Origin: Auanema rhodensis
Lineage: Eukaryota > Animalia > Nematoda
DNA length: 64,000 nucleotides
NCBI GenBank assembly: GCA_964057225.1
Contig: OZ059894.1
Span: forward strand, 10,912,001 to 10,976,000
Direction of reading: 5' to 3'
Shown here: positions 757-53,622 of the stretch, piece after piece
Numbering within the stretch: position 1 is the first letter of the stretch
Layout of the letters: every line of letters starts with the position of its first letter
Made by a program: the position numbers and the translations under genes
The notes under the pieces: model-generated
Told to the model about the DNA's origin: nothing
Databases searched by the model: none
What the model saw: the letters and a program-made list of their open reading frames with translations, nothing else

Positions 757-1662
757 TATTGAAGTAGGAAATGTTTTGCCCCGTAGGACTACAAGTAAAT
801 ATTATCTAGCACAAGGCTATTAGAGAATGATAAGATACTACCTGCACTAAGTGCGTCGCATCGTAAAGGGAAAAAAAATTAAACAATGGGAGTTTAACAG
901 CATGAAATTGAGAGAAAAGACATATCCGAGTGTGAATAAAATTACGGGTGAACGGAACATGGAGTACGAGAGACATACAAAACGAGACTAAGTGAAAAGA
1001 AAAAGTCTTGTATCACGTTCATGAAGGTTCGACGGATCCGGTAAGAAGCTGCGGGTTCAGAAGGTCAGCTTTCATCTCGTAGTCGTGGCGCATCAGGAAT
1101 TTGTGAAGCTTTCCGGCTTTGCAGACGGCTGTATTGGTCCTCGTAGGATGGTGGAAGATGTTGTCGCTTAGTGATGTTACACATAAAGATATGCAAAAAT
1201 AGAACAATTCAAAGAAAAAGAGCACAATTAAAACGAGATTTGGAGAGAAGAGAAGTCTTATATCACTTTCGATGGTTCGGAAGCTCCAGTCTGCTGCTGC
1301 GGTTTAGGGGGTGCAACTGGCATGTCGGAGGCGTAGCACATCATAGGTCAAGCTTGCTGGACTCCCGGCTCGGCTGGTGGCTGTGAGTTTTCCTTGTGCT
1401 TGTTCTCGGTGGTGGTCCCTGGGCTGTCTCTTCACCAAAAATTACTATACTAATTGCACATTTCATTTAAACGACCCATTTCAGAAGCTTTAAGAGGAAA
1501 AGCTACAATTAGCATAGGACCGCCTCAAGGCCTGGTGGATCATTCAATTTAGTTTCAATCGCCAAGTATAGCGGCCTGGGCCCTTGGGTCAATTCACTGA
1601 ACCAGTGTAGTATCGATTGTTCAATGGAACACATATCGAAGGTTAATTCGATAAGAACGATT
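757..1662 (-). mobile_element. Non-autonomous U2-targeting retroelement (SINE/SIDE-like), ~865 bp body plus U2-derived leader
   Basis: Inserted at U2 nt 38/39; no RT ORF; 3' terminus TTGTAGTC..CGGG..AACATT..CTAC.TCAATAA matches the family B 3' terminus; 5' end carries U2 nt 39-79. Confidence 0.8.
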
Positions 1663-15496: not shown

Positions 15497-18400
15497 TAAT
15501 AACCAATCAATAAATGTAACATCACCAGCATACATCGACGAGTTAGGATCAATCAACCTAGAACATATCAAGTTTAATGGAAGCAACATTTTCAACAACC
15601 TAACAGAATCAACGTTTCCTATGGCACTAGCAATATCATATGGATCCAGCTTAGCAACGCTACAGGCTACTTTACCAGGAAGAATAAAACCTGTAATCAA
15701 ACAAAGATTAATTCCTAACATGAACCCTGTTACCCTAACAGCAGGAGCAGCCAGCAGCTTACTACTCAGTTACGAACATGCAAAAGAAGCTATAACTTGG
15801 AAAATGTTTGACTTTCTGTCACCAATATGGGAAAAGATTCAAACCTGGACACTACGCGTACTTGCTATCATTGGATCAATCATCATAACAATTGGCATAA
15901 TCACACTCGCCACCTGGATAATAAAAATATACGCATGTAGTTCAAGGATACCCATCAACAATGTCAAATGGGAAGCAGAATACTTACAACCACTATCAAC
16001 TGAGAACACAAGAACAGAAACATCTCATCCTTCTCCGTCCGCTCCATACGTCGACAACCATCACAACAGCTGTCAACTCACATTGTATGATCCTTCAGCA
16101 CCAATTCCTGAACACATTTATGAAGCTTATTTCCCTACAAGCATGAAGAAAGAAAACATAAACTACATAGGAGGATCACAATTACCGTTTGTCCCGATTT
16201 CAATCCACAATCACATCTTTAAGGCACTATGGGACACGGGAGCATCAGCATCATACATGCGTGAATCCACCTTCAAACAACTGCCCGCTGCAACGATGGT
16301 ACTAAAACAAACAACAGCGATAGTCGCGAATAAATCTAAATTCTCATTTATGGGATACACAAGGATCCTCATAACAATAGGAACAACAGAAACAGAACAC
16401 AAATTTTATGTAGCAGAAGATAACTACTGTCCAGCACCAGTGTTACTTGGAATAGACTTCATGGAAGCATTACATCAACAAGGAATTCACACCTCACTTC
16501 CGCTGGATAAAACAATTGTTATCGGCACAACACATGTTCCACTAGCACGAGAAACATCTCCGTGGGAACACCAGACCACGAAAGCATATGTGGTTAGCTT
16601 AGAAAACAAAACGCTAAGACCAGGAGAAACAAGAACGCTCACGCTAGAAGTACACGATCCAGAAAGCTATGAACAGGCGTTTCTAGATTGTAAGAAACCA
16701 GGCAACAAACTCTCTTTCACGCCTACTATATTTACGCCAACTGGATACGGAGTACAAATTTACGCGACGAATATATGCAAACAGCCACTCGAAATTCAAA
16801 TGAATCAAGAAATAGGGATAGCAGAAGCGATACCAAAGGACAACCAAGAAAAATACAAAGGACAATACATACCTCCGGAAGCTCGATGGGAAGAACAACT
16901 GCCATATTTCCCAGACAATTTCATCAATGAGCTTAACCTTTCAGAAGCCTGCTTCTCACAAATCGAACAACAGCAACTGAAAGAAATAATTTTACTACAT
17001 AAACAAGCGTTTCTCAACGAAGATAGAAATATCGGACTCTTCCTAGGACCAATTGAACACTCCATTCCAATCATGCCAGGAAAAACACCATCATTCAAAA
17101 TTACTTATCGTATACCACTCTCCCAACAAGAAGAAGTGGAGAAACAAATAGAAGAAATGCTACAACAAAGAATCATTGAACCATCAAACTCAATGACAAC
17201 TAGTCCAGTAATTTTGGTGAAGAAGAAAGACAAAACTTATAGATTTGTAACGGACTTTCGAGCTCTGAATGCAATCACTCAGAAACAAGTATATGTCATA
17301 TCAAACATACAGGACATCCTAGATTTGGCCGCTGGAGCAAGGATCTTCAGCAACTTTGATTTAGTATCTGGATTTTTCCAAATACCTCTTAAGAAAGAAG
17401 ATCGTCATCTTACAGCTTTCACAACAACAAGTGGAACTTATCAATATTGTCGAATGCCGATGGGATTATGTGGATCACCCCATACTTTTCAAAACGCAGT
17501 ACGATACCTGCAATCAATGGTTAAATGCAAGCTATTCGTATATCTAGATGATTTACTGTTAATCTCTGAATCTACGACAGCACATTTAAAAGATATTGAA
17601 GAAGTTTTGGAAGCAGTAACTCAAATAGGATTCAAAATAAAACTGAAGAAATGCGCATTCGCAAGAAAGGAAGTAAAATTTCTAGGATACATAGTTGGAC
17701 AAGAAGGAATTAAACCGGACCCACATAAAATTAAGGCAATACAAGATTATCCCCAACCAAAATCAACAACAGGAGTAAGAGCTTTCATGGGAGTAGTAAA
17801 CTACTTCAGAAGGTTCATAAAGAACGCTGCAGGAATAGCAACACCACTCTACAACCTCACTCGGAAAGACACTCCGTTCAAATGGACAGAAGAAGAAGAA
17901 ATTGCTTTTAATACTTTGAAGAAAACATTGACTCAAGCACCTGTGTTACAAGCACCAATCCCGAAGCGACCATATGTTATTGAAAGTGATGGAAGTATGA
18001 TAGCAGTTGGCGCTGTGCTACTTCAAGCGAAAGACGATCAAGAACCATTACATCCAATAGCTTTTGCTAGTCGGAAACTCAACAAAGCTGAAAGGAATTA
18101 TCCACCAATAGAAGTAGAAGCATTGGCTCTTACATTCGCCGTCAAACAATTTCGCACCTACATACTAGGAACAGCAACCAAAATTATCACGGATCATAGA
18201 CCACTTACTAGTTTAATGACTAGAAAAGATTTAATAGGTCGTTTAGCAAAATTTCAAATTGTTTTACAAGAATACGATATTGAAATTATCTACAGACCAG
18301 GAAAATTAAATAGTGTATGTGACGCATTATCACGATACTTTGAAGATGAAATCAACGAAGCAAAGCCACCAGCAAAGAAGAAAAACGAAAGAAAAACGAC

Positions 18401-20360
18401 GGAAGATACTATTCATCAGATAAACACCTTCACGATAGCAGATATTCGATCAGTTCAGAATCAATCAAATTGGATAAAAGAAACTATGGATAAAATAAAG
18501 AACAATACAGCTGGACGACAACTGACGGACAGATATATTGTGTACAACGATGTACTATACTCAAAACCAAAAAGAAGCCTACAAGTACCACGAACAATTT
18601 TACCACGAGAAGAGCACATAATTAATCCAATTATGAAGAAATTTCATGAAGATCCGACACTCGGAGCTCATCTAGGAATAAACAAAACAATGGACTCAAT
18701 ATCAAGACGATTTACATGGACTGGAATGCAAGAAGACATTACAAACTACATCAACAGATGTCTTGCTTGTGCAAAAAGAAAGAACAATCCTCACGAAGCA
18801 ACGGTGGAACCAATGAAAAATTTTCCAACATCAACAAAACCATGGCAAAGAGTACACATGGATATACTCGGACCATTACCTAGGACAGAACAAGAAAACA
18901 GATATGTTCTTTCAATTCAAGATTCTTTTTCAAAATGGATTATCGCAATTCCGCTAATCAGACAAACATCAGGAGAAATTATATCAGCTATCGAAAAATA
19001 TCTCTTCTATGTTTTTGGACCACCTGTTACTATCATCACAGACAATGGATCTAATTTTATTTCAAACGATTTCACTACTATGTGCAGTAATTTTGGAACT
19101 ACACACCACACTACTATGCCGTATTACAAAAACGCTAACGGACAAGTAGAAAGATTGCATCGGACGATCGAAGAAGCATTAACAGCCTACGTTAATGACG
19201 AACAAAACGATTGGGATAAAATACTTCCGAAGATTATTTTTACACTCAACAGATTACCAAACGCCACCACTAAAACATCACCATACGAATGTTTGTTTGG
19301 ACAAGTAGCACGTCTAGCCATTGACAAAAACTTGGAAACACCGGAAGAACAAAATATCACGGATCAGCTCAAAAACTTAAGAGATATTCAAGAAAAAGTC
19401 AAGGAAAAGATTGCCACCAACGAAGAAAGAATGAAGCAGAAATACGATCAAGCACATAGGACAAAAGAAAGAATATTAGATATAGGAGATCGAGTATTTG
19501 TACAAAGAGCGAACCCAAACAACAAATTACAAATACGAAGAGATGGACCTTACCGGATAGTGACAATTGAAGGAAACAACATCAGCATAACGGATCAAGA
19601 TGGAAATATTATAAAAGCTCACAAAAATAACATACGTTATTTTCCACCAGACGATAATCTTATATCAACAAGAAATAATGAAGAAGAGGAAGAAGAAGAC
19701 CAAGACATAGCAAACGAAGAAGAAGAAGAAGAAGAAGAAGCAAGTTGGAATAATCTGGATGAATGGGAACAAACCAATAATACGGAAAATAACAACAACT
19801 GTTACCCAACAGGCAGTCCAGATACTCTCGCGCAACTGTTACCTATCACAGGGAATAACAGAGGAGTAAACGAAGAAGAAATTGAACATAATTCAGAAAC
19901 ACCTGACGACCTTACTACAGCAAGAAGAATAACAAATTCTAATATACATTTAGAAGATGAATCAACAACAATCGACAGAATTCAAGAGGACCTCAGACAG
20001 CTGACACCTTTCTCTCAAGAAGAAGGTTCTAATCAAAACGATATAGAAGATAATAACGCAAAAACATACGAAAAGCTACGAGATCAATTCAAGAATGAAA
20101 ACAGAAAGGAGCTATTTGAGGACAGAAACAAAAACTCACCAACAATCAAAAATTGGAACACTACACTTGCCGCAGCACTAGGAATAGGAAATGAAAACTC
20201 ACGCCCGTATCATGTTAAACTACAACCCAAAAGAAAAACACAAGACGAAGAAATCAGAAATAATGGAGAATTGGAACTACATGGAAAAGCGGATCAAAGC
20301 AAAAAGCAGCAGAATATATCTCCAACGCAAAACAAAGGAGAACAAGTACGAAACTTTTAA
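15435..20360 (+). CDS. Gypsy 1 Env C-terminus/TM fused to protease-RT-RNase H-integrase
   Basis: TM VLAIIGSIIITIGIITLATWII, LWDTGAS, MPMGL, YLDD, ESDGS, ITDHRPL, HHCC, HMDILGP, TDNG, NGQVER. Confidence 0.95.
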   Translation: MPYHADSQSRIPGKKNDQWTNNNQSINVTSPAYIDELGSINLEHIKFNGSNIFNNLTESTFPMALAISYGSSLATLQATLPGRIKPVIKQRLIPNMNPVTLTAGAASSLLLSYEHAKEAITWKMFDFLSPIWEKIQTWTLRVLAIIGSIIITIGIITLATWIIKIYACSSRIPINNVKWEAEYLQPLSTENTRTETSHPSPSAPYVDNHHNSCQLTLYDPSAPIPEHIYEAYFPTSMKKENINYIGGSQLPFVPISIHNHIFKALWDTGASASYMRESTFKQLPAATMVLKQTTAIVANKSKFSFMGYTRILITIGTTETEHKFYVAEDNYCPAPVLLGIDFMEALHQQGIHTSLPLDKTIVIGTTHVPLARETSPWEHQTTKAYVVSLENKTLRPGETRTLTLEVHDPESYEQAFLDCKKPGNKLSFTPTIFTPTGYGVQIYATNICKQPLEIQMNQEIGIAEAIPKDNQEKYKGQYIPPEARWEEQLPYFPDNFINELNLSEACFSQIEQQQLKEIILLHKQAFLNEDRNIGLFLGPIEHSIPIMPGKTPSFKITYRIPLSQQEEVEKQIEEMLQQRIIEPSNSMTTSPVILVKKKDKTYRFVTDFRALNAITQKQVYVISNIQDILDLAAGARIFSNFDLVSGFFQIPLKKEDRHLTAFTTTSGTYQYCRMPMGLCGSPHTFQNAVRYLQSMVKCKLFVYLDDLLLISESTTAHLKDIEEVLEAVTQIGFKIKLKKCAFARKEVKFLGYIVGQEGIKPDPHKIKAIQDYPQPKSTTGVRAFMGVVNYFRRFIKNAAGIATPLYNLTRKDTPFKWTEEEEIAFNTLKKTLTQAPVLQAPIPKRPYVIESDGSMIAVGAVLLQAKDDQEPLHPIAFASRKLNKAERNYPPIEVEALALTFAVKQFRTYILGTATKIITDHRPLTSLMTRKDLIGRLAKFQIVLQEYDIEIIYRPGKLNSVCDALSRYFEDEINEAKPPAKKKNERKTTEDTIHQINTFTIADIRSVQNQSNWIKETMDKIKNNTAGRQLTDRYIVYNDVLYSKPKRSLQVPRTILPREEHIINPIMKKFHEDPTLGAHLGINKTMDSISRRFTWTGMQEDITNYINRCLACAKRKNNPHEATVEPMKNFPTSTKPWQRVHMDILGPLPRTEQENRYVLSIQDSFSKWIIAIPLIRQTSGEIISAIEKYLFYVFGPPVTIITDNGSNFISNDFTTMCSNFGTTHHTTMPYYKNANGQVERLHRTIEEALTAYVNDEQNDWDKILPKIIFTLNRLPNATTKTSPYECLFGQVARLAIDKNLETPEEQNITDQLKNLRDIQEKVKEKIATNEERMKQKYDQAHRTKERILDIGDRVFVQRANPNNKLQIRRDGPYRIVTIEGNNISITDQDGNIIKAHKNNIRYFPPDDNLISTRNNEEEEEEDQDIANEEEEEEEEASWNNLDEWEQTNNTENNNNCYPTGSPDTLAQLLPITGNNRGVNEEEIEHNSETPDDLTTARRITNSNIHLEDESTTIDRIQEDLRQLTPFSQEEGSNQNDIEDNNAKTYEKLRDQFKNENRKELFEDRNKNSPTIKNWNTTLAAALGIGNENSRPYHVKLQPKRKTQDEEIRNNGELELHGKADQSKKQQNISPTQNKGEQVRNF

Positions 20361-21840: not shown

Positions 21841-23281
21841 GACCACAAAGAAAACAACAGGAACAGTAACAATAACAACAAAAAAAATTTTTTTCACCTA
21901 TGTGTCTAAAGGTTAGCCATGTATCCGTTTATATATATATATATCAACAGTAAAAAGTCCAATCAAGAGAGAAATTTTTTCAACACATAGTTGTACCGGT
22001 GCTCACACATGTTAAACACAAAAATAATAAAATTAAATTGATTGGAAGAATTATTTTTCAACTTTTTTTTCACATCTAACAATCACTGTTTTTGCTCATA
22101 ACTTTTTTAATTCGCAATTCGTGATCATATATAACAAGTTTCCATCAATATTGATTCTTTTAAAATTTTTTTTTCATCAATTTTGTACTTACTTACTTCT
22201 CTGAAAAATGTTTTACCATGTATCCATTTGGATACATGTCACCAGTTAAAAGAACCATCATGTTGGAATCATCTCAAACTACGTTTTTATAGGTTTTCCA
22301 ACATGCTGGACACAAATATTACATATTTAGAGCAATTGGAACAATTCTTTTTTTTAACATTCTTTAACATAAGGGTCCCCCCTACCTTTCTTTCTATTTT
22401 TTCTTCATATGTACGTAGATACTATAGAGAACTATGATAGAAAACTTTAACATTCACGAAATCATCATTTCTCATTACGCTACGGAGGTTTAAAAAGTTG
22501 TGTTTTACCTTATAATAGACCGGAAAACCCTTGTGTTAAAACTGGACCGTTTTTACACATATAAAAATGTCCCGTATTCGGGACCCTAATGTAACTTTTG
22601 ATTCCCTATATTTTTTTTCATGAAATTTACAATCTACTGTAGAAAGAAGAATTATTTTTATAAAAACTGTAAATTTTTGAAAAATGAAAACAAAACGAAA
22701 ACAAAAACAACTTTTTTTTGAACATTTTCTCACACAAGGGTCCCCCCTTACCTACTTTTTTTCTCATTACTCGTTTCAACCTCATCCGATCACTCTGCAA
22801 ACATGTTTAATCGTTCTAACTTGTTGAAATACGTCTTAAAAGTCTAAACAACATGCATATGCATAATAGAAACCACCCGAATAGGCCCCCACGCACTAAA
22901 CGAGATATATACATTACCAGTATAGTAATAGAACACATATTGAAGATTAATTCGATAAGAACAATTTATTGACGTAGAGAATGTTTGTTCCGAAAAACTA
23001 CAATATTAAACTATAAAAGTAACAAAAGCGTAGAGGCAGCAAAGACATGAATAAACATAAATGTAAATACAGAATTACCAGGTAGTACATAAGTATGACA
23101 AAAAATTATAAGAAAGCCATGAAAATAGAAGGTTTGTGAACAAATGAGAGGTACATCTTTGATCGTATAGTCATTTCTAAACCGTTCGTATGCTGCAGCA
23201 TCGTCATAAGCGTCACTCAAGTTGAATTTCCATGTGTACTACACGATTTTCATTCTTATTGTTACATTCTTTCCCTGAGGG
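21841..23281 (-). repeat. Array spacer (U2 downstream to next 5S upstream), including the fossil element at 22931-23185
   Basis: Reverse complement of ~46527-48216 with a ~250-bp internal deletion near 22387. Confidence 0.9.
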
Positions 23282-23429
23282 AATGGGCCGTTCCCGCCAG
23301 CAGTGCAAGAGCGGGTCGACCCGTGAGGTGGAGCTAGCAAGCCAGCATCTACCTCAAGTCTCAAAAATCGGTTAACCTTATTGTGAACCAATGGAACACA
23401 TATCGAAGGTTAATTCGATAAGAACGATT
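23282..23429 (-). ncRNA. U2: U2 snRNA 3' part (nt 39 to ~186), interrupted
   Basis: Same sequence as 609-756. Confidence 0.95.
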
Positions 23430-23808
23430 AATGGTTTATTGAATAACTAATGTTATGATACAATAAATAACCAATAAAAAAGAGCCCAGAATCGGGGAGA
23501 CGGTATTACCAGTACAACTTAAAACAGCAAGTAATTAAAAAGTACATAATAAGACACATTGCCAACAGAGGCTAAAACGACTCAAGAGTCGGGGGAGTGG
23601 GTTAAAAAAAATGAACAAAAAAATGAATATTAAAGCAGAACAATGAGAAATCAAGTGCCGCTATGATCAAACAATTTGAGTGCCTACGGCAATGATGTTA
23701 AAAATAAACAACAAAATACATGTACCAATGAAGGTCAGAAAGAAAGAAACAAAAGACAAAAATAAGTAATACAAAAAGTAAATACATTACAATCAAATCA
23801 CAAACAAG

Positions 23809-26800
23809 TCAATTGATAATTTCTTCTTCATATTGCCTTACACCAGAAACATGTTCCACGTAGATATTCCTGGCCCACTTGATGGTATCGGCGACGACGA
23901 GCTTCTCCATTAGCCGGTTGTAGTGGCTGCTGATCTTGAGTGATCGGAGGGCTTGTCCGTTGAGCGGGTCCATAGTTCCAAGCATTCCTACGACATATGC
24001 TTCTACACTAGTCTTATAACCAAGACATTGGTATTGGCTGGCTATGTCAGCATATTTCCTCTCCTTTATCATACGCGCGGCTATCATGGCTTGACGGCGG
24101 TTTTCATAGCTCACTGTAACATCAACGATACTACAGTGTTTTGCGTCATGATCGACCACTACTATGTCAGGTCGGAGTGTACTATTAATGCCAGGAAGAG
24201 GCTGGTTAGTGTAAACTTCTCCGTTTTTAGGCTCTGGCAGGGCTTTGATAAGACGGTCCACGATGTTGTTGTGGCGGAGTTGGATTGCTCTCGTGTGAGA
24301 GTGGCAGTGTCCAAGAACATGTGCAGCAGTTTCGTTGGAGTAACTACACCTGCGGCACTGTTTGTTTCCTTCTCCGTGTCTTCTACAGCCATTGAGCTGG
24401 AGAGTATTGAGTCGAGCCTTGTGGATGAATCGCCAATCAGCAAACCGTATGAAATCTCCCTTCGCCATAAAGTGATTGGACGCTTTGTTGAGCATTGTGA
24501 CATCAAAGACTTTCCCTTGATCCGGTTTTTGAAGAAGGATCCGAAGGTCTTTCAGCCATAATGCACGTCGCAGGCTTCTGTGGCATAGTGAAGGTGTTAA
24601 CAGTTGGTTGTTTAGATTGAGTTCTAAACCACTTTCGAGGCATGTCCAGTTAGCGTTGATGAGTTTCTTGAGTTGACGCATCGCTACTCTTACTCTAGTC
24701 CAGATGGAGGAAACATCAGATGTTTCGGTGTCGAAAATGCCATCAACGGAACCGTTGTAATATGCAGCTGTCTCATCGTTACTGGCTTGACGTTTAATCC
24801 TTTTTGATGCTACTTTTTTTGAGTCTTGATGCGCAATATCAGCTACTACAAGATCAGATGACTTCAAAAGTTGGTAGGCATGAGTGACTTCACAGACGTC
24901 TGACAGGTGTTGGAGTCGAGAGAGACCAAGTCCGCCGTAGTTAGTTGGCAGGTAGATTGGTTCAGCACTGGCGTTTGGAGGATAGTGCATCCATCTACGG
25001 GCACAGCGTTTGAGTTCTTTGTCAAAGGCGACTAGTTTACTCTTTGGGACGTGGCCATTCGTCATATGAAAATTAAGGCAGGGCATCAGGAAGGTGCGTA
25101 CTGCGTCAGCTTTCTGCCATTCAGCAAGTAAGGATTTGTCAATTTTTTCCAAGTGTTGACTCATAATATTCACTGTTGGAACCGCAGACTTATGTAAATG
25201 CATTCCAGTAGGGATTCCCAGGTGGGAGTAGCTGTCGAATTTGCTGAGAGCGGGTAGAGAGGAGCTCTGTAGCATGTATGAGGCTGTTGATATTTTCCCT
25301 TTGTCGATCGTCAAGGTGGCGCATTTCGCTGGTTTGAAGGTCAAGCCTGTGAAATTAGCCGCATTTGATGCTGCGTCCAACATTTTCTGTAGATCTTCTG
25401 ATGATGAGGAGACCAGGGCAAGGTCATCGGCGTACGCTAGCACAGCGATGTTGTGGTTGTGTAGCTTATAGCCAGTAGAGGATTCCAAGATGGTTTTAAT
25501 TAGAGGTTCAATGGCAAGGTTGAACAGGATCGGAGATAGTGGGGATCCTTGTAACACACCTGCATGAACTGGAATGGTCGATGTGAGTCCGGAGCCTGTC
25601 TGGATTCTTGTAGAGGCATCTGTGTATAGAGCTCGTACTCGGGATATTGAGGCTTCAGCCACTCCTGACCATCTTAGAACGTCTAGCAGAGTTTCGTGTG
25701 GCAGCGATCCAAAAGCGTTTGCGAGATCAAGCCAAGCAATTGCAATTTTCTCACGTTTACGTTTAGCGTCCGCAATGGTACTTTGCAACATAAAGTTGTG
25801 TTCCATGCATCCAGCTTTGGCCACAAAGCCCTTTTGGGAGGGAGAAAGTCTTTTTTCTGCTCTTGCCCATGTTAGCAGTCGATGCGTAAGACAAGCTGAG
25901 TACGTCTTACCAATTGTGCACGAAAGTGCTATTGGTCGCCAGTTGTTAATGTCAGCTTTATCACCTTTCTTATGGATGAGGACGGTGGTCGACTCTTTCC
26001 AGGAAAAAGGGATGTGTCCTAGCTTGTGTACGGTGTTAAATATCGCTGCTAATATGTGACCTCCTTGGTCAAATTTCTTCCAGTGCGAGTATCGAAGTCC
26101 ATCAGCTCCTGGAGCCGTATCGCTGCAACGTCGTATGCGTTCCCAGACTTCCAAAGGGGTGAAAACACCTTCTAATGGGTCGGTACTAGCTGGCAAATCC
26201 GGTCTGGTGACTGTGATGGGGAGGGCTGGGCCTTGACTGCTGTGAACAGAAAGGAAATGTTTTTCAACCTCTGCAGATGGTATGGTGCAGGTTTCACTTT
26301 GTTCTCCGAGCAGTTGTCGAAAGGCTTTCTTCTTGTTGGCCCTCCAGAGCTTCTGGAGCTTCATCGCCTGGGTTTTTTGGTCTTCCTCAGGTTGTGTGTG
26401 TGGTCGGCGCCTTTGTCGGAAGTTGGGAACTTTGATCATAATGTCAAGAGACTTTCTGATTGCGTCTACCAACTCTTCCAGGACCTGCTCGAGCTCACTT
26501 TTGCACACAACCTTTTTAATTCTATCCACCCAAGTATTTTCAGAGTTTCTATTCGGATCAGGGTCGGCAAAAAATGGTTCTGTACTCGAAACCCTGATCT
26601 CGTTGAATATTTCACTCTCTCGCGGAAGGGGGGAAACTTCGGCCTCTGGGGACAAGTCCAGAATTGGGGCCTCAAACAAGCGTACCGTTGATGGAGATCC
26701 TTGTTCCTGTCCACTGGATGATGTTTCCTCCATTGTACGCTCCTCCACGGGCGGGGTGGTCGTCCTTGTGCCTGGTGGGCGGGTGTTCCTGATCCTCCGC

Positions 26801-27087
26801 AATATAGGGCGGGAACTGGGCTCTCTCGGAGATAGAGGTGAGATCACCACAGTTTCCTCTATGATGCGGAGGCATCCTTCAGCTTTTTTCTGATGGCTTT
26901 TAACGGCCTTCAGATTGCTGGTGAGGCCACAGGCACGGCACTCAAATTCTACTCCGACCTCATGTTCTCTCCGAAGATGGCGGACGAGACCATTGTGGTC
27001 TGAGTAGGATCGCGGAATAGGAGCGCAGATTGAACAAGAAAAAGGGCTCTGAAGAGGCACCTTTAGCTTGTAAAGCCCTTGCTCCAT
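23809..27087 (-). CDS. Family A protein: two N-terminal zinc fingers, RT, CCHC knuckle, PD-(D/E)xK endonuclease (1092 aa, intact)
   Basis: CSIC..H..H, APGADG, NWRPI, WLDLANAFGS, GVLQGSPLSP, YADD, CRRC..ETAAHVLGHC, RHNNIV, RPDIV..DVTV..KERKY. Confidence 0.95.
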   Translation of the reverse strand: MEQGLYKLKVPLQSPFSCSICAPIPRSYSDHNGLVRHLRREHEVGVEFECRACGLTSNLKAVKSHQKKAEGCLRIIEETVVISPLSPREPSSRPILRRIRNTRPPGTRTTTPPVEERTMEETSSSGQEQGSPSTVRLFEAPILDLSPEAEVSPLPRESEIFNEIRVSSTEPFFADPDPNRNSENTWVDRIKKVVCKSELEQVLEELVDAIRKSLDIMIKVPNFRQRRRPHTQPEEDQKTQAMKLQKLWRANKKKAFRQLLGEQSETCTIPSAEVEKHFLSVHSSQGPALPITVTRPDLPASTDPLEGVFTPLEVWERIRRCSDTAPGADGLRYSHWKKFDQGGHILAAIFNTVHKLGHIPFSWKESTTVLIHKKGDKADINNWRPIALSCTIGKTYSACLTHRLLTWARAEKRLSPSQKGFVAKAGCMEHNFMLQSTIADAKRKREKIAIAWLDLANAFGSLPHETLLDVLRWSGVAEASISRVRALYTDASTRIQTGSGLTSTIPVHAGVLQGSPLSPILFNLAIEPLIKTILESSTGYKLHNHNIAVLAYADDLALVSSSSEDLQKMLDAASNAANFTGLTFKPAKCATLTIDKGKISTASYMLQSSSLPALSKFDSYSHLGIPTGMHLHKSAVPTVNIMSQHLEKIDKSLLAEWQKADAVRTFLMPCLNFHMTNGHVPKSKLVAFDKELKRCARRWMHYPPNASAEPIYLPTNYGGLGLSRLQHLSDVCEVTHAYQLLKSSDLVVADIAHQDSKKVASKRIKRQASNDETAAYYNGSVDGIFDTETSDVSSIWTRVRVAMRQLKKLINANWTCLESGLELNLNNQLLTPSLCHRSLRRALWLKDLRILLQKPDQGKVFDVTMLNKASNHFMAKGDFIRFADWRFIHKARLNTLQLNGCRRHGEGNKQCRRCSYSNETAAHVLGHCHSHTRAIQLRHNNIVDRLIKALPEPKNGEVYTNQPLPGINSTLRPDIVVVDHDAKHCSIVDVTVSYENRRQAMIAARMIKERKYADIASQYQCLGYKTSVEAYVVGMLGTMDPLNGQALRSLKISSHYNRLMEKLVVADTIKWARNIYVEHVSGVRQYEEEIIN

Positions 27088-27139
27088 CTCTAGCAGATCT
27101 AAAGACTTACGTAGTACAGTTGCAATATCGATTTAGCCA

Positions 27140-27197
27140 TTAACCTTATTGTGAACCAATGGAACACATATCGAAGGTTAATTCGATAAGAACGATT
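27140..27197 (-). ncRNA. U2 nt 39-96 segment (leader of family A copy 1; target of copy 2)
   Basis: Exact match to 46379-46436. Confidence 0.9.
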
Positions 27198-29183
27198 AAT
27201 GGTTTATTGAATAACTAATGTTATGATACAATAAATAACCAATAAAAAAGAGCCCAGAATCGGGGAGACGGTATTACCAGTACAACTTAAAACAGCAAGT
27301 AATTAAAAAGTACATAATAAGACACATTGCCAACAGAGGCTAAAACGACTCAAGAGTCGGGGGAGTGGGTTAAAAAAAAATGAACAAAAAAAATGAATAT
27401 TAAAGCAGAACAATGAGAAATCAAGTGCCGCTATGATCAAACAATTTGAGTGCCTACGGCAATGATGTTAAAAATAAACAACAAAATACATGTACCAATG
27501 AAGGTCAGAAAGAAAGAAACAAAAGACAAAATAAGTAATACAAAAAGTAAATACATTACAATCAAATCACAAACAAGTCAATTGATAATTTCTTCTTCAT
27601 ATTGCCTTACACCAGAAACATGTTCCACGTAGATATTCCTGGCCCACTTGATGGTATCGGCGACGACGAGCTTCTCCATTAGCCGGTTGTAGTGGCTGCT
27701 GATCTTGAGTGATCGGAGGGCTTGTCCGTTGAGCGGGTCCATAGTTCCAAGCATTCCTACGACATACGCTTCTACACTAGTCTTATAACCAAGACATTGG
27801 TATTGGCTGGCTATGTCAGCATATTTCCTCTCCTTTATCATACGCGCGGCTATCATGGCTTGACGGCGGTTTTCATAGCTCACTGTAACATCAACGATAC
27901 TACAGTGTTTTGCGTCATGATCGACCACTACTATGTCAGGTCGGAGTGTACTATTAATGCCAGGAAGAGGCTGGTTAGTGTAAACTTCTCCGTTTTTAGG
28001 CTCTGGCAGGGCTTTGATAAGACGGTCCACGATGTTGTTGTGGCGGAGTTGGATTGCTCTCGTGTGAGAGTGGCAGTGTCCAAGAACATGTGCAGCAGTT
28101 TCGTTGGAGTAACTACACCTGCGGCACTGTTTGTTTCCTTCTCCGTGTCTTCTACAGCCATTGAGCTGGAGAGTATTGAGTCGAGCCTTGTGGATGAATC
28201 GCCAATCAGCAAACCGTATGAAATCTCCCTTCGCCATAAAGTGATTGGACGCTTTGTTGAGCATTGTGACATCAAAGACTTTCCCTTGATCCGGTTTTTG
28301 AAGAAGGATCCGAAGGTCTTTCAGCCATAATGCACGTCGCAGGCTTCTGTGGCATAGTGAAGGTGTTAACAGTTGGTTGTTTAGATTGAGTTCTAAACCA
28401 CTTTCGAGGCATGTCCAGTTAGCGTTGATGAGTTTCTTGAGTTGACGCATCGCTACTCTTACTCTAGTCCAGATGGAGGAAACATCAGATGTTTCGGTGT
28501 CGAAAATGCCATCAACGGAACCGTTGTAATATGCAGCTGTCTCATCGTTACTGGCTTGACGTTTAATCCTTTTTGATGCTACTTTTTTTGAGTCTTGATG
28601 CGCAATATCAGCTACTACAAGATCAGATGACTTCAAAAGTTGGTAGGCATGAGTGACTTCACAGACGTCTGACAGGTGTTGGAGTCGAGAGAGACCAAGT
28701 CCGCCGTAGTTAGTTGGCAGGTAGATTGGTTCAGCACTGGCGTTTGGAGGATAGTGCATCCATCTACGGGCACAGCGTTTGAGTTCTTTGTCAAAGGCGA
28801 CTAGTTTACTCTTTGGGACGTGGCCATTCGTCATATGAAAATTAAGGCAGGGCATCAGGAAGGTGCGTACTGCGTCAGCTTTCTGCCATTCAGCAAGTAA
28901 GGATTTGTCAATTTTTTCCAAGTGTTGACTCATAATATTCACTGTTGGAACCGCAGACTTATGTAAATGCATTCCAGTAGGGATTCCCAGGTGGGAGTAG
29001 CTGTCAAATTTGCTAAGAGCGGGTAGAGAGGAGCTCTGTAGCATGTATGAGGCTGTTGATATTTTCCCTTTGTCGATCGTCAAGGTGGCGCATTTCGCTG
29101 GTTTGAAGGTCAAGCCTGTGAAATTAGCCGCATTTGATGCTGCGTCCAACATTTTCTGTAGATCTTCTGATGATGAGGAGACC
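27198..29183 (-). mobile_element. 5'-truncated family A copy 2 (ORF remnant 27578-29183)
   Basis: Near-identical to 23430-25414; truncated just after YADD; joined to U2 nt 20. Confidence 0.95.
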
Positions 29184-29203
29184 CCAAAAGGCCGAGAAGC
29201 GAT
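29184..29203 (-). ncRNA. U2: U2 nt 1-20 remnant (nt 21 to ~38 lost at the 5' junction)
   Basis: ATCGCTTCTCGGCCTTTTGG with intact upstream flank. Confidence 0.9.
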
Positions 29204-31503: not shown

Positions 31504-34500
31504 TTAGATAGTTGTTGGTCCTCCTATCACTGTTGAAGGTCGTTTCTTTCGTTCAACCGATGTGTTTGGTAAATTGATATGGGCATCAGGTATCTGAGAG
31601 CGTGTAAGCCTACTTTTAGGTTTTAAAGGGGGTATCACGCTGTTGTACCTTATTGGTACGTGAAACGGTTTTGGAGGAGTAATCGGATTTTTGTCTTCTA
31701 AACCGAGTGCCAATTTGAGAGCTGAGCTCCATCTTTTGATTGTAGGTAACTCTTTTTGTCTTTCTTCGTAGAGCTCTTGTCTTGTTTCTTCTCCAATTTT
31801 GTCGACCAATTGTTGGAATTGGTTGTTTTTTTCTTTGTTCGTAGATGTCTTGTCTGCTGTATCTAGTCCAGATTCCGATTGATAACTTTCTTGTTGTCTT
31901 TCCAACGTATCTTCCTGCGGTGTTATTGTTTCTTTAGTTGTTATTATAGGTCGGCTTTGTTCGTAGAACTCGTCCTCGTTATCGCTGTCCGAATCAGAAA
32001 TTGGGGGCGTGGCTTGACCGTTGTTCTGAGCGCGCGTATTGACCTGATCGTGCCGGGACCTGTTGCTATAAATAGCGGATCCCGCGTCATTTCTGCCGTG
32101 CTCGCTTTCCTCGATGTTATTGTCATCGGGTGGAAAGTATCTTATATTATTCTTATGAGCCCGTATTCTATTCCCGTCGTCATCTGCTAATATGACATTA
32201 TTTTTATTTATTTCTTTTATGAGGTACGGTCCATCACTGACTGCTTGCAGTTTGTTGGTGGGCTTTGCCCGTTTGACGAGAGCTCTGTTATCCACGTAGA
32301 GTTCTCGTTCTTGTATCTTGTGTGCCTCGTCGTATTTCTTCTTCATCTTCTCATTGTTCCTTGTTATCCTTTCGTATATTTTCTCATGTAAATCTCCTGT
32401 GGGTTTGAGAGTGGGTGCGGGAGTGTCCAGGTTGTGGTCGATTGGTAGTCGCGCTGCCTGACCAAAGATACAATCGTAGGGCGGTGTGCGAGTTGTGGCA
32501 TTAGGTAGCCTGTTGAGTGTGAATACTATCTTAGGTAGTATATCATCCCAATTGTCCTGTTCCGTATTTACGTACGACGTTAGTGCTTCTTCTAGTGTTC
32601 TGTGTAGTCGTTCCACTTGTCCATTTGCATTCTTGTAATATGGCATAGTTGTATGATGCTCGGAACCTAGTTGTTCGCACATTGTTTTGAATTCGTGAGA
32701 AACAAAATTGGATCCGTTGTCCGTTATGATCCTTTTTGGTGGTCCGAAAACAAAGAACAGGTTTTTCTTAATTGCTGTTATGATTTCTTCTGATGTTTGT
32801 CTTAATAATGGTGTTGCTATTATCCATTTGGAGAACGCGTCCTGTATTGATAAGATATACCTGTTCCCGTTTTGTGTTCGTGGTAGTGGTCCGAGAATGT
32901 CCATGTGAACTCTTTCCCAAGGTTGTGAAACGGTGGGAAAGTTTCTCATGGGTTCCACCGTTGCTTCATGCGGGTTATTTTTCCTTTTTGCGCACTGAAG
33001 ACATCTGTTGACGTAGTTGGTGATATCTTCTTGCATTCCTGTCCATGTATAACGGCGTAGAATTGAGTCATGTGTTTTGTTGATTCCTAGATGAGCTCCT
33101 AGTAATGGGTCCTTATGAAACTTATCAATTATTGCTGTAGTAATTGTTGGATCATTGGGTAGAACGGCTCGAGGTGTTTGGAATGCTGTTTTTGGCTTTG
33201 CATAGAGAATATTATTTTGAACTATATATCGATCTGTTAGTTGCCTTCCTGCTGTTTTGTTCTGAATCTTTTCTTTTGTTTCCATGATCCATTCTGTTTC
33301 CTCTTGAATTGTCCGAAGGTCCGTGATAGTTGTAATAGTAGAGATTTGATGCGTGGGAGATTCTTTCGTTTTCTTCTTTCTTTCCTTCGCTTCGTTGATT
33401 TCGTCTTCGAAGTATCTTGATAATGCGTCACAAACGCTATTAAGACGTCCTGGGCGATAGATAATTTCAATATCATACTCTTGGAGTACTATTTGAAATT
33501 TGGCTAGTCTTCCTATGAGGTCTTTTCTTGTCATAAGGCTAGTTAAGGGTCTATGATCGGTTATGATTTTGATCGGTGCTCCTAAGATGTAGGTGCGAAA
33601 CTGATGAACTGCGAAAGTTAGGGCTAAGGCTTCGATCTCAATCGGGGGGTAGTTCCTTTCTGCTTTGTTTAGTTTACGGCTAGCGAAAGCTATTGGGTGC
33701 AGTGGTTCTTGATCATCCGCAGATTGCAATAGAACTGCTCCTACTGCAATTATGCTTCCGTCGCTTTCAACTACGTATGGTCGTTTTGCTCTAGGTGCCT
33801 GAAGAACCGGTGCTTGACAAAGGGCTTTCTTCAGGTGTTGGAAAGATTTTTCTTCTTTGTCTCCCCATGTGAAAGCTTTATCCTTTTTTGTGAGGTCGTA
33901 GAGAGGTGAGGCAATTCCCGCGGCATTTTTGATGAATCTTCGAAAGTAGTTAACGACGCCCATGAAAGCTCTGACTCCTGTTGTTGACTTTGGTCTGGGG
34001 TAGTCTCTGATGGCTTTAATTTTCTGAGGGTCCGGTTTTATTCCCTCATATCCGACTATAAATCCGAGAAACTTGACTTCTCTTTGTCCAAAGGTGCATT
34101 TCTTCAGCTTAATTTTGAATCCTAGCTCTATTGCTACTCTCAAAACTTCTTCGATATCTTGAAGGTGTTGTGTGGTTGATTCTGATATAAGCAGAAGATC
34201 GTCTAGATATACGAAGAGTTTGCAGCGTACATGTTGTTGTAGGTACCGTACTGCGTTTTGGAATGTATGTGGGGCTCCACAGAGTCCCATGGGCATTCGA
34301 CAGTATTGATATGTACCACTAGTTGTAGTAAATGCTGTTAAATGTCGATCTTCTTTACGCAGAGGTATTTGGAAGAATCCTGATACCAAATCAAAGTTAG
34401 TGAAGATGCATGCTCCTGCTGCTAGATCGAGAATATCTTGTATGTTTGAAATGACGTATATCTGCTTTAGTGTTATGGCATTTAATGCTCGAAAATCCGT

Positions 34501-37200
34501 AACAAAACGGTATGTTTTGTCCTTCTTTTTGACGAGTATAACGGGACTTGTGGTAATAGAAATTGATGGTTCTATTATACCTTGTTCGAGCATTTCCTCC
34601 ACCTGTTTTTCGACTTCTTCTTGTTGAGTTAGAGGGATCCTGTATGTGATTTGAAATGATGGAAATTTTCCTGGTATGATAGGTATATTATGTTCCACTG
34701 GTCCTTTAAAAAGTCCGATATTGCGATCCTCGTTCAAGAAAGCTTCCTTATTTCTAAGTACTATTTTCTTTAATTCTTGTCTTTCCAATTGGGTGAAGAT
34801 GGTGTTTGTTACGTCGAGATCCTTTATGAAGTCGTCTGGGAAGTATGGTAGTTGTTCTTCCCATCTTGCTTCCGGTGGGACGTATTGTCCTTTTTGTTCT
34901 TTGATATCTCTTGGGATAGCGTAAGCAGTTCCGATTCCTTGATTTGTTTTAATTTTGATTGTTTCGGGTGAGATATTTGTAGCGAATATCTGAACCCCGT
35001 ATCCTGTTGGCGTGAAAGTTGTAGGGGCGAAAGTCATTTTTCCTATTCGTTGTGAACTTCTTATAAAAGCTTGTGCGTATGATGCTGGATCGTCTATTTC
35101 CAACGTGAGCGATCTGGTTTCTCCTGGGTAAAACTGTTTAGTTTCCAGGCTTACTACATGAGCTATCGTGTGGTTCTCGGTCCACGGTGAGTAGTCTTGT
35201 GCTAGAGGTACTATTGTATCTCCGACTAGCAATGAATTCTGAAGTGGTCGCAATGATGTATTTATTCCTATTTTGCTGAGGGCTTCTATAAAGTCTATTC
35301 CTAATAAGATAGGTGCTGGGCAGTGGTTGTTGGCAGAAATCAGTATTTTGTGCTCAATCTCTGTTTTTCCAATAACAATTGGAAGTCTTGTGTAGCCCAG
35401 GAAGGAAAACCGTGATTTGTTTGCTACGATAGCTGTTGTCTTTTCACCAACCATCGTTGCTGCCGGTAGTTGTTGAAATGTGCTTTCCTTCATATATGAT
35501 ATAGAAGCTCCTGTGTCCCATAAAGCAGTAAAGATCTGATTGTGGATGGAGAGAGGTACGAAAGGTAGTCGTGATCCTCCGATGTAGTTAATCCTTGATT
35601 CTTTCATGGAGTATCGTGGTAGATAGGCTAGAAAGTCGTTGTCTGATAGTGGAGCGTTGGGATCGTATCGGGAGATTCTTGAATAGAATTTGTTTTGTTG
35701 AGATTTATTCAGTGGTTGTAATTGCTGAAGTTCGATTTCTTTATTTTCTCGCCTTGGTTCTTCTTCTTCTTCTTTGAATGTTATTTGATTGATTGGTATC
35801 CTTGTGGTACATGCATATATTTTTAATGCCCAGATGGTAGCAGTTATAAGTCCTATTGCGACGAGAATTCCTCCAATAATGGCTAGTGTCCTTAGTATCC
35901 ATGCTGTAATTGATTCTCCTACATATTCGAAGAAATTTGTGATTTGTTTTTCTGCGTTGTTTGATATGTTATCTGCTAACATTAATGTCGTTCCAACTGT
36001 TCCTCCTATAATGCCTATTGGATTTAGATTAGAGAATCCAGACTGTTTGAAGACTGGTTTCAGCTTTCCTGGCAGAGTGGCTTGTAAGGATGCTAAGCTC
36101 GATCCGTAGGAGATAGCCAGTGCCATTGGAAATGTTGACTCCGTGAGGTTTGAAAATATGTTGGAATTGTTGAACTTAATGTGATCAATTTTTACAGATG
36201 TGAGTTCATCCGAAAATGAGAAGTGAGTTACATTCAATGTTGAATTATCTTTCATCCATTGATTGTTTATTTTGTAGGGATCTGATGTAGCCATATCGCA
36301 TGCTATGATGTGAGCATATGGTGTCAAATCTCTTGATCCTGGTGTAATGAATAGTTTGCCGTGATGTTCCGTGTCTACAGGCGTCTCCAGGTAACATTTA
36401 TCGTCTCGTTTGTGATCCGAATATACATGTGTTATTTGTACAGGGGTGCATGGCATGACGTAGATGAGATGTTCTCCGACGAATTTGGCTGAAATGTCCT
36501 GTCGACGAAGCATAGTGCGAATTCCTATGGTCGGATTAATTTGCAGGATTGCCCACCAGGTAAGTAGCTGTTTATTTTGCATTCTGCAAACGCTTTTCTT
36601 TGTTATTTGGAAAGCTTGTAAGATTTCCTCCTCGAGTTTTGACGTAGAGTATTGGAGGTGAGACCTTGTATCTTGTTGTCGTAGTTGATCATCGTATTTT
36701 TGAATAATATCTGCTCGTGTTCGTAGGAAATTGAGGTGTGCTTGTGATCCTGTGTGAGATTTAATTTCCTCTACCGGTTGAGTTGTTGTTGCTCGTTTTG
36801 TGGTAATCCGAGTTGTGGGAATTGTCCTAGGAGGTTTTCTGCGAGGTGTGGTAGTGAGAGGACGTGGTGGTGGAGTTACTGGAGTTGTTGTACTCTGGTA
36901 ATAATGATATCTCCTTGGTGTGGTTGTGAATTGAGGTAAAGGTGTCCGATAAGTAGTAGTTGTCGGATCAACTGTGGTTGCAGGGGTTCTAGTGGTTGTT
37001 GTAGTTGTAGTAGTTGTGGTAGTGGTTGTCGTAGGACTAGCACCCGGTGACTCAATGAGCTGAAGATATGTTTGTTGAAATAATAAGCTGTCTTCTTCCG
37101 TGATGGGTCTGGCTGTAGGTAGTGTTTTCGGGAATCCGTAGTTTTGTGCGTGTCCGTTGAAGATGAGAGTATAGTTGGGAAAGGTAATCGCTGAAGAATT
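31504..37200 (-). CDS. Gypsy 2 Env C-terminal half (Thr-rich, gB-like, TM) fused in frame to protease-RT-RNase H-integrase
   Basis: The frame of ORF 31504-36582 reads open upstream (FPNYTLIFNG, poly-Thr); LWDTGAS, YLDD, HMDILGP, TDNG. Confidence 0.9.
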   Translation of the reverse strand, partial: NSSAITFPNYTLIFNGHAQNYGFPKTLPTARPITEEDSLLFQQTYLQLIESPGASPTTTTTTTTTTTTTTRTPATTVDPTTTTYRTPLPQFTTTPRRYHYYQSTTTPVTPPPRPLTTTPRRKPPRTIPTTRITTKRATTTQPVEEIKSHTGSQAHLNFLRTRADIIQKYDDQLRQQDTRSHLQYSTSKLEEEILQAFQITKKSVCRMQNKQLLTWWAILQINPTIGIRTMLRRQDISAKFVGEHLIYVMPCTPVQITHVYSDHKRDDKCYLETPVDTEHHGKLFITPGSRDLTPYAHIIACDMATSDPYKINNQWMKDNSTLNVTHFSFSDELTSVKIDHIKFNNSNIFSNLTESTFPMALAISYGSSLASLQATLPGKLKPVFKQSGFSNLNPIGIIGGTVGTTLMLADNISNNAEKQITNFFEYVGESITAWILRTLAIIGGILVAIGLITATIWALKIYACTTRIPINQITFKEEEEEPRRENKEIELQQLQPLNKSQQNKFYSRISRYDPNAPLSDNDFLAYLPRYSMKESRINYIGGSRLPFVPLSIHNQIFTALWDTGASISYMKESTFQQLPAATMVGEKTTAIVANKSRFSFLGYTRLPIVIGKTEIEHKILISANNHCPAPILLGIDFIEALSKIGINTSLRPLQNSLLVGDTIVPLAQDYSPWTENHTIAHVVSLETKQFYPGETRSLTLEIDDPASYAQAFIRSSQRIGKMTFAPTTFTPTGYGVQIFATNISPETIKIKTNQGIGTAYAIPRDIKEQKGQYVPPEARWEEQLPYFPDDFIKDLDVTNTIFTQLERQELKKIVLRNKEAFLNEDRNIGLFKGPVEHNIPIIPGKFPSFQITYRIPLTQQEEVEKQVEEMLEQGIIEPSISITTSPVILVKKKDKTYRFVTDFRALNAITLKQIYVISNIQDILDLAAGACIFTNFDLVSGFFQIPLRKEDRHLTAFTTTSGTYQYCRMPMGLCGAPHTFQNAVRYLQQHVRCKLFVYLDDLLLISESTTQHLQDIEEVLRVAIELGFKIKLKKCTFGQREVKFLGFIVGYEGIKPDPQKIKAIRDYPRPKSTTGVRAFMGVVNYFRRFIKNAAGIASPLYDLTKKDKAFTWGDKEEKSFQHLKKALCQAPVLQAPRAKRPYVVESDGSIIAVGAVLLQSADDQEPLHPIAFASRKLNKAERNYPPIEIEALALTFAVHQFRTYILGAPIKIITDHRPLTSLMTRKDLIGRLAKFQIVLQEYDIEIIYRPGRLNSVCDALSRYFEDEINEAKERKKKTKESPTHQISTITTITDLRTIQEETEWIMETKEKIQNKTAGRQLTDRYIVQNNILYAKPKTAFQTPRAVLPNDPTITTAIIDKFHKDPLLGAHLGINKTHDSILRRYTWTGMQEDITNYVNRCLQCAKRKNNPHEATVEPMRNFPTVSQPWERVHMDILGPLPRTQNGNRYILSIQDAFSKWIIATPLLRQTSEEIITAIKKNLFFVFGPPKRIITDNGSNFVSHEFKTMCEQLGSEHHTTMPYYKNANGQVERLHRTLEEALTSYVNTEQDNWDDILPKIVFTLNRLPNATTRTPPYDCIFGQAARLPIDHNLDTPAPTLKPTGDLHEKIYERITRNNEKMKKKYDEAHKIQERELYVDNRALVKRAKPTNKLQAVSDGPYLIKEINKNNVILADDDGNRIRAHKNNIRYFPPDDNNIEESEHGRNDAGSAIYSNRSRHDQVNTRAQNNGQATPPISDSDSDNEDEFYEQSRPIITTKETITPQEDTLERQQESYQSESGLDTADKTSTNKEKNNQFQQLVDKIGEETRQELYEERQKELPTIKRWSSALKLALGLEDKNPITPPKPFHVPIRYNSVIPPLKPKSRLTRSQIPDAHINLPNTSVERKKRPSTVIGGPTTI

Positions 37201-46340: not shown

Positions 46341-46526
46341 ATCGCTTCTCGGCCTTTTGGCTAAGATCAAAGTGTAGTAATCGTTCTTATCGAATTAACC
46401 TTCGATATGTGTTCCATTGGTTCACAATAAGGTTAACCGATTTTTGAGACTTGAGGTAGATGCTGGCTTGCTAGCTCCACCTCACGGGTCGACCCGCTCT
46501 TGCACTGCTGGCGGGAACGGCCCATT
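46341..46526 (+). ncRNA. U2: U2 snRNA, the only uninterrupted copy (3' end approximate)
   Basis: ATCGCTTCTCGGCCTTTTGGCTAAGATCAAAGTGTAGTA, stem IIa, Sm site, stem-loops III and IV. Confidence 0.97.
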
Positions 46527-46537
46527 CCCTCAGGGAA
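46525..46537 (+). terminator. Short hairpin at the U2 3' end (putative 3'-end formation signal)
   Basis: TTCCC-TCA-GGGAA in all four U2 loci. Confidence 0.5.
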
Positions 46538-46622: not shown

Positions 46623-46877
46623 ACGGTTTAGAAATGACTATACGATCAAAGATGTACCTCTCATTTGTTCACAAACCTTCTATTTTCATGGCTTTCTTAT
46701 AATTTTTTGTCATACTTATGTACTACCTGGTAATTCTGTATTTACATTTATGTTTATTCATGTCTTTGCTGCCTCTACGCTTTTGTTACTTTTATAGTTT
46801 AATATTGTAGTTTTTCGGAACAAACATTCTCTACGTCAATAAATTGTTCTTATCGAATTAATCTTCAATATGTGTTC
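46623..46877 (+). pseudogene. Fossil family B-like 3' UTR plus decayed U2 fragment in the spacer
   Basis: Reverse complement of 258-512. Confidence 0.85.
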
Positions 46878-49185: not shown

Positions 49186-49440
49186 GAACACATATTGAAG
49201 ATTAATTAGATAAGAACAATTTATTGACGTAGAGAATGTTTGTTCCGAAAAACTACAATATTAAACTATAAAAGTAACAAAAGCGTAGAGGCAGCAAAGA
49301 CATGAATAAACATAAATGTAAATACAGAATTACCAGGTAGTACATAAGTATGACAAAAAATTATAAGAAAGCCATGAAAATAGAAGGTTTGTGAACAAAT
49401 GAGAGGTACATCTTCGATCGTATAGTCATTTCTAAACCGT
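49186..49440 (-). pseudogene. Fossil family B-like 3' UTR plus decayed U2 fragment in the spacer
   Basis: Copy of 258-512. Confidence 0.85.
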
Positions 49441-53471: not shown

Positions 53472-53622
53472 TATGAAATACAAGGAATATAAATATGGTA
53501 AGTTGAAAAAAAATTAGTTAAAACATTAACTTATATTACCAGCAACTTTGTAGTTTGATCGCTTCTCCCAGAGATGGTCAGTACGTAGTTTGAACTTGCT
53601 CTGGTGTCTCAAATAACTCGTC

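Follow-up and report, generated by a model that had tools for sequence, protein, structure and literature searches.

A probable U2-complementary box beside the start codon of a Utopia-type retrotransposon from the nematode Auanema rhodensis and of its scorpion relatives

A retrotransposon that resides inside U2 snRNA genes and carries, almost touching its start codon, a tract antisense to its own target raises the question of where this tract came from and whether it pairs with anything. The locus at which we pursued this question is a window of 64,000 nt, by which we mean the whole stretch of DNA analysed, that holds a linked U2-5S array together with BEL/Pao and Gypsy elements. Rfam recognised several partial U2 genes and one intact gene in the window, and the latter served as reference U2 and as blastn query for a U2 map, which places every element on the minus strand, co-oriented with U2. 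The first stack runs from U2 nt 1–20 through a 5′-truncated family A copy, U2 nt 38–96 and a full family A copy to U2 nt 38–190, the second from U2 nt 1–38 through a truncated A copy, U2 nt 38–89 and family B to U2 nt 39–190, while a non-autonomous element, N, is flanked by U2 nt 1–79 and U2 nt 39–190. N (...cttcaataa, 757–780) and family A (...ttcaataaaccat, 23431–23450) end in a common 3′ tail, which fits N borrowing the reverse transcriptase of family A or B. Two Gypsy-type polyproteins lie at 31504–36582 (minus strand) and 15435–20360 (plus strand); the former begins with an env-like piece, an N-terminal match to the Pfam viral fusion glycoprotein family PF24664 (E = 4e-16) that is fused ahead of protease-RT-integrase. 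The repeat unit further contains, some 465 bp downstream from every U2 gene, a diverged 32-nt U2-like fragment (nt 43–74, 91–94% identity; 258–289, 22931–22962, 46846–46877 and 49186–49217), which may be an old U2 remnant.

Utopia elements are U2 snRNA gene-specific RLE non-LTR retrotransposons, and the U2 genes that they disrupt were described as lacking the first 38 bp, the 3′ junction falling at U2 nt 38/39 (Kojima and Jurka 2015, PMC4640811). Judged by its sequence, family A is a Utopia-type RLE non-LTR retrotransposon. As in that description (PMC4640811), it is inserted in the orientation of U2 with its 3′ junction at U2 nt 38/39, it occurs in tandem stacks with variable 5′ boundaries, and its single ORF combines zinc fingers, RT, a C-terminal CCHC and PD-(D/E)xK endonuclease motifs, with the invariant residues C911, R912, C914, H923 and C928 as well as R972, P973, D974, D989 and K1008. 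In an RT tree of U2-flanked elements, it groups with those of scorpion, beetle, spider and nematodes. Two differences should be noted: the published target duplication is none in arthropods and 20 bp in reptiles, in contrast to U2 leaders of 41–59 bp here, and PMC4640811 is silent on an antisense-U2 tract in the 5′ UTR (the word "complementary" occurs 0 times in its text). Our literature search likewise returned no paper linking Utopia with U2-complementary UTR sequence. A search for RNA evidence turned up pieces of family A in no more than three small runs, contig-only and of uncertain type, which yielded neither joints nor ends nor strand information. The coordinates of all features are collected in Table 1.

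Table 1. Positions of U2, of family A and of the antisense-U2 tracts in the window
Feature	Position	Strand	Basis or remark
Intact U2 snRNA gene, reference U2	46341..46530	+	Rfam RF00004, 148 bits
Family A leader, U2 nt 38–96, 59 nt, target duplication	27140..27198	-	blastn 100%; stops just short of the Sm site
Family A 5′ UTR, 52 nt, leader-to-ATG interval	27088..27139	-	sequence and blastn
Family A ATG	27085-27087	-	reverse complement of the plus strand
Family A ORF, 1092 aa: N-terminal zinc fingers, RT, CCHC, restriction-like endonuclease motifs	23809..27087	-	RVT_1 E = 3e-28
Family A 3′ UTR, end ...aataaaccat	23431..23808	-	
Family A 3′ flank, U2 nt 38–190, canonical Utopia 3′ junction	23278..23430	-	blastn
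5′-truncated family A copy stacked upstream	27199..29183	-	joined to U2 nt 1–20 (29184-29203) via TGG microhomology
Family A candidate anti-U2 box	27090..27116	-	blocks complementary to U2 nt 21–23, 24–28, 29–32, 34–39
GTAAGT hexamer, 5′-splice-site-like, inside the box	27105..27110	-	chance expectation ~0.011 per 52 nt
Family B 5′ UTR box GAGAAGCGAT, exact antisense of U2 nt 1–10	53558..53567	-	
N, first 18 nt, antisense to U2 nt 31–48	1604..1621	-	16/18 U2 positions; one mismatch, one 1-nt deletion, one 1-nt insertion
N, GGCGAT, antisense of U2 nt 1–5	1558-1563	-	40 nt past the first tract

The plus strand at 27090–27116 reads CTA gc AGATC t AAAG acttac GTAGTA and matches 18 of the 19 nt of reference U2 nt 21–39, CTAAGATCAAAGTGTAGTA, in order, the four blocks being separated by insertions of 2, 1 and 6 nt. 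A sequence-only reading of this locus had described the match, a UTR of about 50 nt, a distance of 2 nt between box and ATG, and a looped-out GTAAGT on the element strand; on re-reading the sequence, each of these held, the UTR measuring 52 nt. Smith–Waterman alignment of the whole UTR to antisense U2 gave dinucleotide-shuffle p values of 0.006–0.015 under four scoring schemes, against 0.15–0.34 for sense U2, and a test focused on the 30 nt upstream of the ATG against antisense U2 nt 1–41 gave p = 0.008, with about 1% of the 2325 ATG-upstream 30-mers in the window scoring as high. The entire UTR can be aligned loosely to antisense U2 nt 61→21, but from nt 61 to 40 the palindromic U2 stems make sense and antisense look alike and leave the match ambiguous, and this extension was down-weighted. 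At the junction of the truncated copy with U2 nt 1–20, U2 nt 21–37 are lost between nt 20 and the element; this edge is also an edge of the box, yet we set it aside as an ordinary 5′ truncation at a TGG microhomology. Taken by itself, family A lends the box modest support. A chance resemblance in a short, AT-rich UTR would suit a gapped match that was spotted by eye and that pairs with ordinary energy; it is disfavoured, and to us scarcely credible, by the alignment p values, by the p value at a position that the scorpion data define and by the same box position in the sister clade described below.

Part of the tract could instead represent splicing signals, with UACUAC in the role of a branch-like site and GUAAGU as a 5′ splice site or a place for U1 to bind. 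The rarity of GTAAGT in a UTR of this length (Table 1) and the conserved GGTAAGT of scorpion UTRs would agree with this explanation, but family A has the branch-like site 5′ of the donor and leaves only about 20 nt between donor and ATG, and the collinear match continues to U2 nt 21–32, which no splice signal explains. We consequently grant it hardly any credence.

More weight is carried by the relatives of family A, which were gathered by protein search and subsequent contig look-ups for U2 flanks; a metagenome scan returned 80 loci, none of them with U2 flanks and hence none of use for comparing UTRs. The closest protein relatives include Diploscapter. In the scorpion Centruroides sculpturatus, related elements form stacks separated by U2 nt 40–59, and their N-termini are homologous to that of family A (M..VPLQ(S/P)P..C). 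All ten Centruroides copies carry (CTA)CACATTTGATC(TTAGCC), antisense to U2 nt ~19–38, at 0–8 nt (mostly 0–5 nt) from the homologous ATG, with exact antisense runs of up to 18 nt and p <= 0.004 for each copy in the focused ATG-upstream test, where it should be kept in mind that these copies share a common ancestry and are not ten independent trials. Mean pairwise identity among them is 0.79 in the box core and 0.58, 0.49 and 0.39 in the flanks, and both the pyrimidine tract 5′ of the box and codons 2–7 after it differ in sequence and length. Nine of the ten boxes read CACATTTG, fitting the scorpion U2 variant AAATGTG, and the remaining one reads CACACTTTG, fitting an AAAG variant that is likewise present in the scorpion. 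The box may thus follow the host U2 variant, a covariation that is suggestive, three U2 heads having been sampled.

The proposal that antisense-U2 blocks be sought in Utopia UTRs of other taxa was therefore answered positively, and the earlier suggestion that the complementarity looks selected is supported by the shuffle p values together with the occurrence of the box in all ten scorpion copies at the homologous ATG. We consider the anti-U2 box to be real and probably selected. A quick maximum-likelihood tree places families A and B and the Diploscapter-like elements L001 and L002 together as sister to the scorpion clade (SH-aLRT 97), and the simplest reading of this topology is an ancestral ATG-adjacent box that the scorpion would retain intact, that would have worn down in family A and that B and L001 would have lost. 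The ten scorpion 5′ UTRs have two further features in common, a ~60-nt invariant stem-loop, CGGAAGAGCGGCCTGCACGGTTTAAACGCACCGTGTATTCGCTGCTC, and a 5′-splice-site-like GGTAAGT ~85 nt past the U2 leader (L003:2700–2712, L003:7008–7016; alignment A2 columns 144–152). By sequence, the box is not universal in Utopia: the focused test and inspection of the UTRs revealed no anti-U2 box in L090, L092/L093, the Dendroctonus copies and the spider copy. L090 (Logan contig, L090:1–130), a related Utopia element with 40% identity that is joined to U2 at nt 38 without a leader, has a UTR with sense repeats of U2 nt 28–35 (TCAAAGTGT), including GTGTCAAAG directly 5′ of the ATG, in an orientation opposite to that of family A.

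How strongly would the worn tract of family A pair today? RNAduplex energies of its UTR with U2 nt 1–38 were not above those of shuffled UTRs (p = 0.36), and with U2 nt 1–60 they reached p = 0.018. In the ensemble of a chimera of U2 nt 1–96 and the UTR, only U2 nt 33–39 were predicted to pair with the UTR, through its UACUAC, at a probability of ~1 for nt 34–38; for nt 24–32 the probability was ~0.14, and 27% of shuffled UTRs equalled the overall ensemble pairing of family A with U2. The co-folding of U2 nt 1–96 with the UTR, which had been suggested as a check, hence yielded a confident UACUAC:GUAGUA helix, but overall pairing that more than a quarter of shuffles match. Of the functional regions of U2 that the tract was proposed to mask, only the GUAGUA region is predicted to be covered by the interrupted box of family A, and the U6 helix I region is predicted to stay uncovered; masking would be one among several purposes that fit equally well. 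From the alignment p values and the ordinary energetics it follows that the similarity is real and non-random as sequence and that the pairing potential of family A is weak, so that its descent from antisense-U2 sequence is clearer than its present pairing strength.

Antisense tracts of a different extent occur in other elements. The 10-mer of family B has no other occurrence in the window than at true U2 5′ ends, against a chance expectation of 0.08 per window, and it recurs 27 nt upstream of the ATG in three tandem copies of the distant element L088, again followed by CA. Between these L088 copies (ENA eukaryote contig, L088:10858–11718) lies a complete U2 3′ part (nt ~41–190), an arrangement similar to that of oomycetes in Kojima and Jurka, and their antisense nt 1–10 box lies ~45 nt beyond the U2 3′ end. 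In family B (53557–53567) as in L088 (L088:11683–11693), a C directly follows the box; it may be the expected trace of reverse transcription through the cap G, in two cases only, for which chance is a possible cause. L001 shows a loose antisense of U2 nt 4–27. The tracts of B and L088 stop exactly at U2 nt 1 with no promoter sequence beyond, that of N begins directly after the leader and ends in GCGAT, and the leader end of family A, AAGGTTAA (nt 89–96), is complementary to U2 nt 55–62 and thereby a possible primer. The tracts ending at U2 nt 1 and the complementarity of the leader end suggest an origin by RNA-templated inversion, in which the 5′ part of a U2-headed co-transcript would be reverse-copied at integration, by twin priming or by snap-back from the cleaved top strand, leaving in family A a neutral, decaying remnant. 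Twin priming of the L1 type produces a 5′ inversion in which an inverted copy of the RNA 5′ part comes to lie beside the upstream target. The tracts of B, L088 and N resemble such products in ending at the first nucleotide of the RNA, but twin-priming inversions are one-off defects of single insertions, in contrast to a tract that is inherited and conserved across families. A box broken by three insertions, with pairing not above shuffles, would agree with a neutral remnant as well. However, ten diverged scorpion copies retain the box while their flanks change, and a box that, as in the scorpion, lies ~330 nt from the leader, ends at nt 19–25 and abuts the ATG is not predicted by inversion alone; moreover, an origin by inversion and a later function are compatible. 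We regard inversion without function as unlikely overall and as the main rival for the decayed copy of family A.

We return to a selected box and ask with what it would pair. Its partner is sense U2 nt 19–38, which is offered by the head of a co-transcript in cis, by cellular U2 snRNA in trans and by the top strand of the target DNA. Since the elements lie inside U2 genes in sense orientation, transcription of the first copy in a stack from the U2 promoter would yield an RNA composed of U2 head, leader, UTR and ORF. Tentatively, and at a likelihood that we place a little short of an even chance, we propose that the tract of family A is a worn copy of a conserved, selected anti-U2 box whose cis partner is the U2 head of such a co-transcript. 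According to this proposal, the clade of roundworm and scorpion Utopia elements would keep the box at the 3′ end of the 5′ UTR, against the start codon, and direct it at U2 nt ~19–38, immediately 5′ of the insertion point. Pairing of the box with the head would close the entire 5′ UTR into a single long-range helix, which would place the RNA 5′ end beside the AUG, occlude the branch-point recognition and helix I regions, and may serve the handling of the 5′ end in processing, translation start or masking. Processing, juxtaposition of 5′ end and AUG, and the masking of U2 functional regions would all fit such a helix.

Predicted folds are consistent with this arrangement. In the minimum-energy fold of the first-in-stack scorpion copy with its own U2 head, U2 nt 17–43 pair with the box and the AUG (z = -4.5), and the predicted helix closes the whole UTR, while a consensus fold of the scorpion UTRs alone yields conserved stem-loops with some compensatory changes and leaves the box unpaired. 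In the predicted fold of the natural N co-transcript, U2 nt 1–6 and 31–43 pair with the antisense tracts (z = -3.5), and in the family B chimera U2 nt 1–10 are predicted to be paired at a probability of ~1. Against pairing in cis stand the energy and ensemble pairing of family A, which do not rise above shuffled UTRs. That several Utopia lineages do without the box likewise counts against the proposal. In stacked copies, the upstream U2 nt 1–37 are absent or 1.5–2 kb away, so that pairing in cis would be possible only for the first copy of a stack.

The cis partner is favoured because the U2 head is the only one covalently present, because the folds predict the cis helix and because R2 elements use exactly the same principle (PMC3774820). 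In R2, the P1 stem of a 5′ HDV-like ribozyme uses upstream 28S sequence: P1′ pairs with 28S sequence 9–36 nt upstream of the point of insertion and in this way sets the cut in the co-transcript and the uniformity of the 5′ junction (Eickbush, Burke and Eickbush 2013, PMC3774820). In both cases, a site-specific RLE element thus has a segment of its 5′ UTR that is complementary to the upstream target gene and pairs in the co-transcript, here by prediction, and the distance between the two pairing strands in R2, 23 to over 700 nt (PMC3774820), can be likened to the Utopia case. They differ in that the R2 P1′ comprises ~7 nt inside a double-pseudoknot core, whereas the boxes here span 10–18 nt, and Rfam finds no HDV-like core; further, the box abuts the AUG, and the host is a Pol II snRNA gene as opposed to a Pol I rRNA gene. 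An R2-type nested double pseudoknot, with P3/L3 before P1′ and with P1.1, P4, the C of J4/2 and P2′ after it, was not found around the boxes. Rfam (E <= 10) detected no ribozyme near the boxes of A, B, scorpion sc1 and L088, where only U2 itself matched, and the lack of conservation immediately 3′ of the box speaks against a canonical HDV-like core. Hand-drawn HDV-like folds were rejected accordingly, for family A and the scorpion by the ATG and non-conserved codons directly after the box, and for B and L088 by a non-canonical P2–P3 spacing, with only loose P3-like hairpins visible by eye. Ribosome shunting leaders such as that of CaMV 35S are also closed by a long-range helix around a structured leader, with the 5′ end near the start codon. 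The predicted Utopia leader shares this outline, helix-closed with its 5′ end beside the start codon, as an analogy of shape only, and differs in that neither a short uORF nor evidence of shunting accompanies the Utopia box.

Pairing between RNA and DNA at the target was considered as the second possible use of the box. Here the box would pair with the top strand (nt 19–38) upstream of the nick, and downstream of it the bottom strand would be paired with the sense leader, so that the RNA reads both halves of the target and holds them for formation of the 5′ junction. The box does cover exactly the target segment adjoining the insertion point, and in the scorpion the leader (nt 40–59, sense) and the box (nt 19–38, antisense) represent adjacent, non-overlapping halves of the target. 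Such a guide would, however, have no need to touch the ATG, and box cDNA, being of top-strand sense, would be of no help in second-strand priming. We know of no experimental precedent among RLE elements for guide pairing of RNA with DNA at the target, and consider this use distinctly improbable.

Pairing in trans with the cellular U2 snRNA or snRNP, for example as a tether near U2 loci or as a decoy, would draw on the same complementarity, which takes in the branch-point recognition sequence, and on a box that may track the host U2 variant. Yet a bulged branch adenosine is missing, U2 nt 8–25 lie within stem I of the snRNP, and nothing in the present data separates trans from cis. We hold pairing in trans to be very unlikely and retain pairing in cis as the preferred reading.

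Utopia elements are confined to a few essential snRNA genes transcribed by Pol II, and a conserved box against the target segment, placed at the start codon, provides a concrete and mutable handle on the expression, processing and translation of the U2 co-transcript. It would extend the principle known from R2, in which a UTR pairs with the upstream target, to another host gene, another polymerase and possibly another purpose. If the pairing controls translation or 5′-end processing, it would reveal how an element parasitic on U2 genes can exploit the U2 promoter without making poisonous U2-like RNAs.
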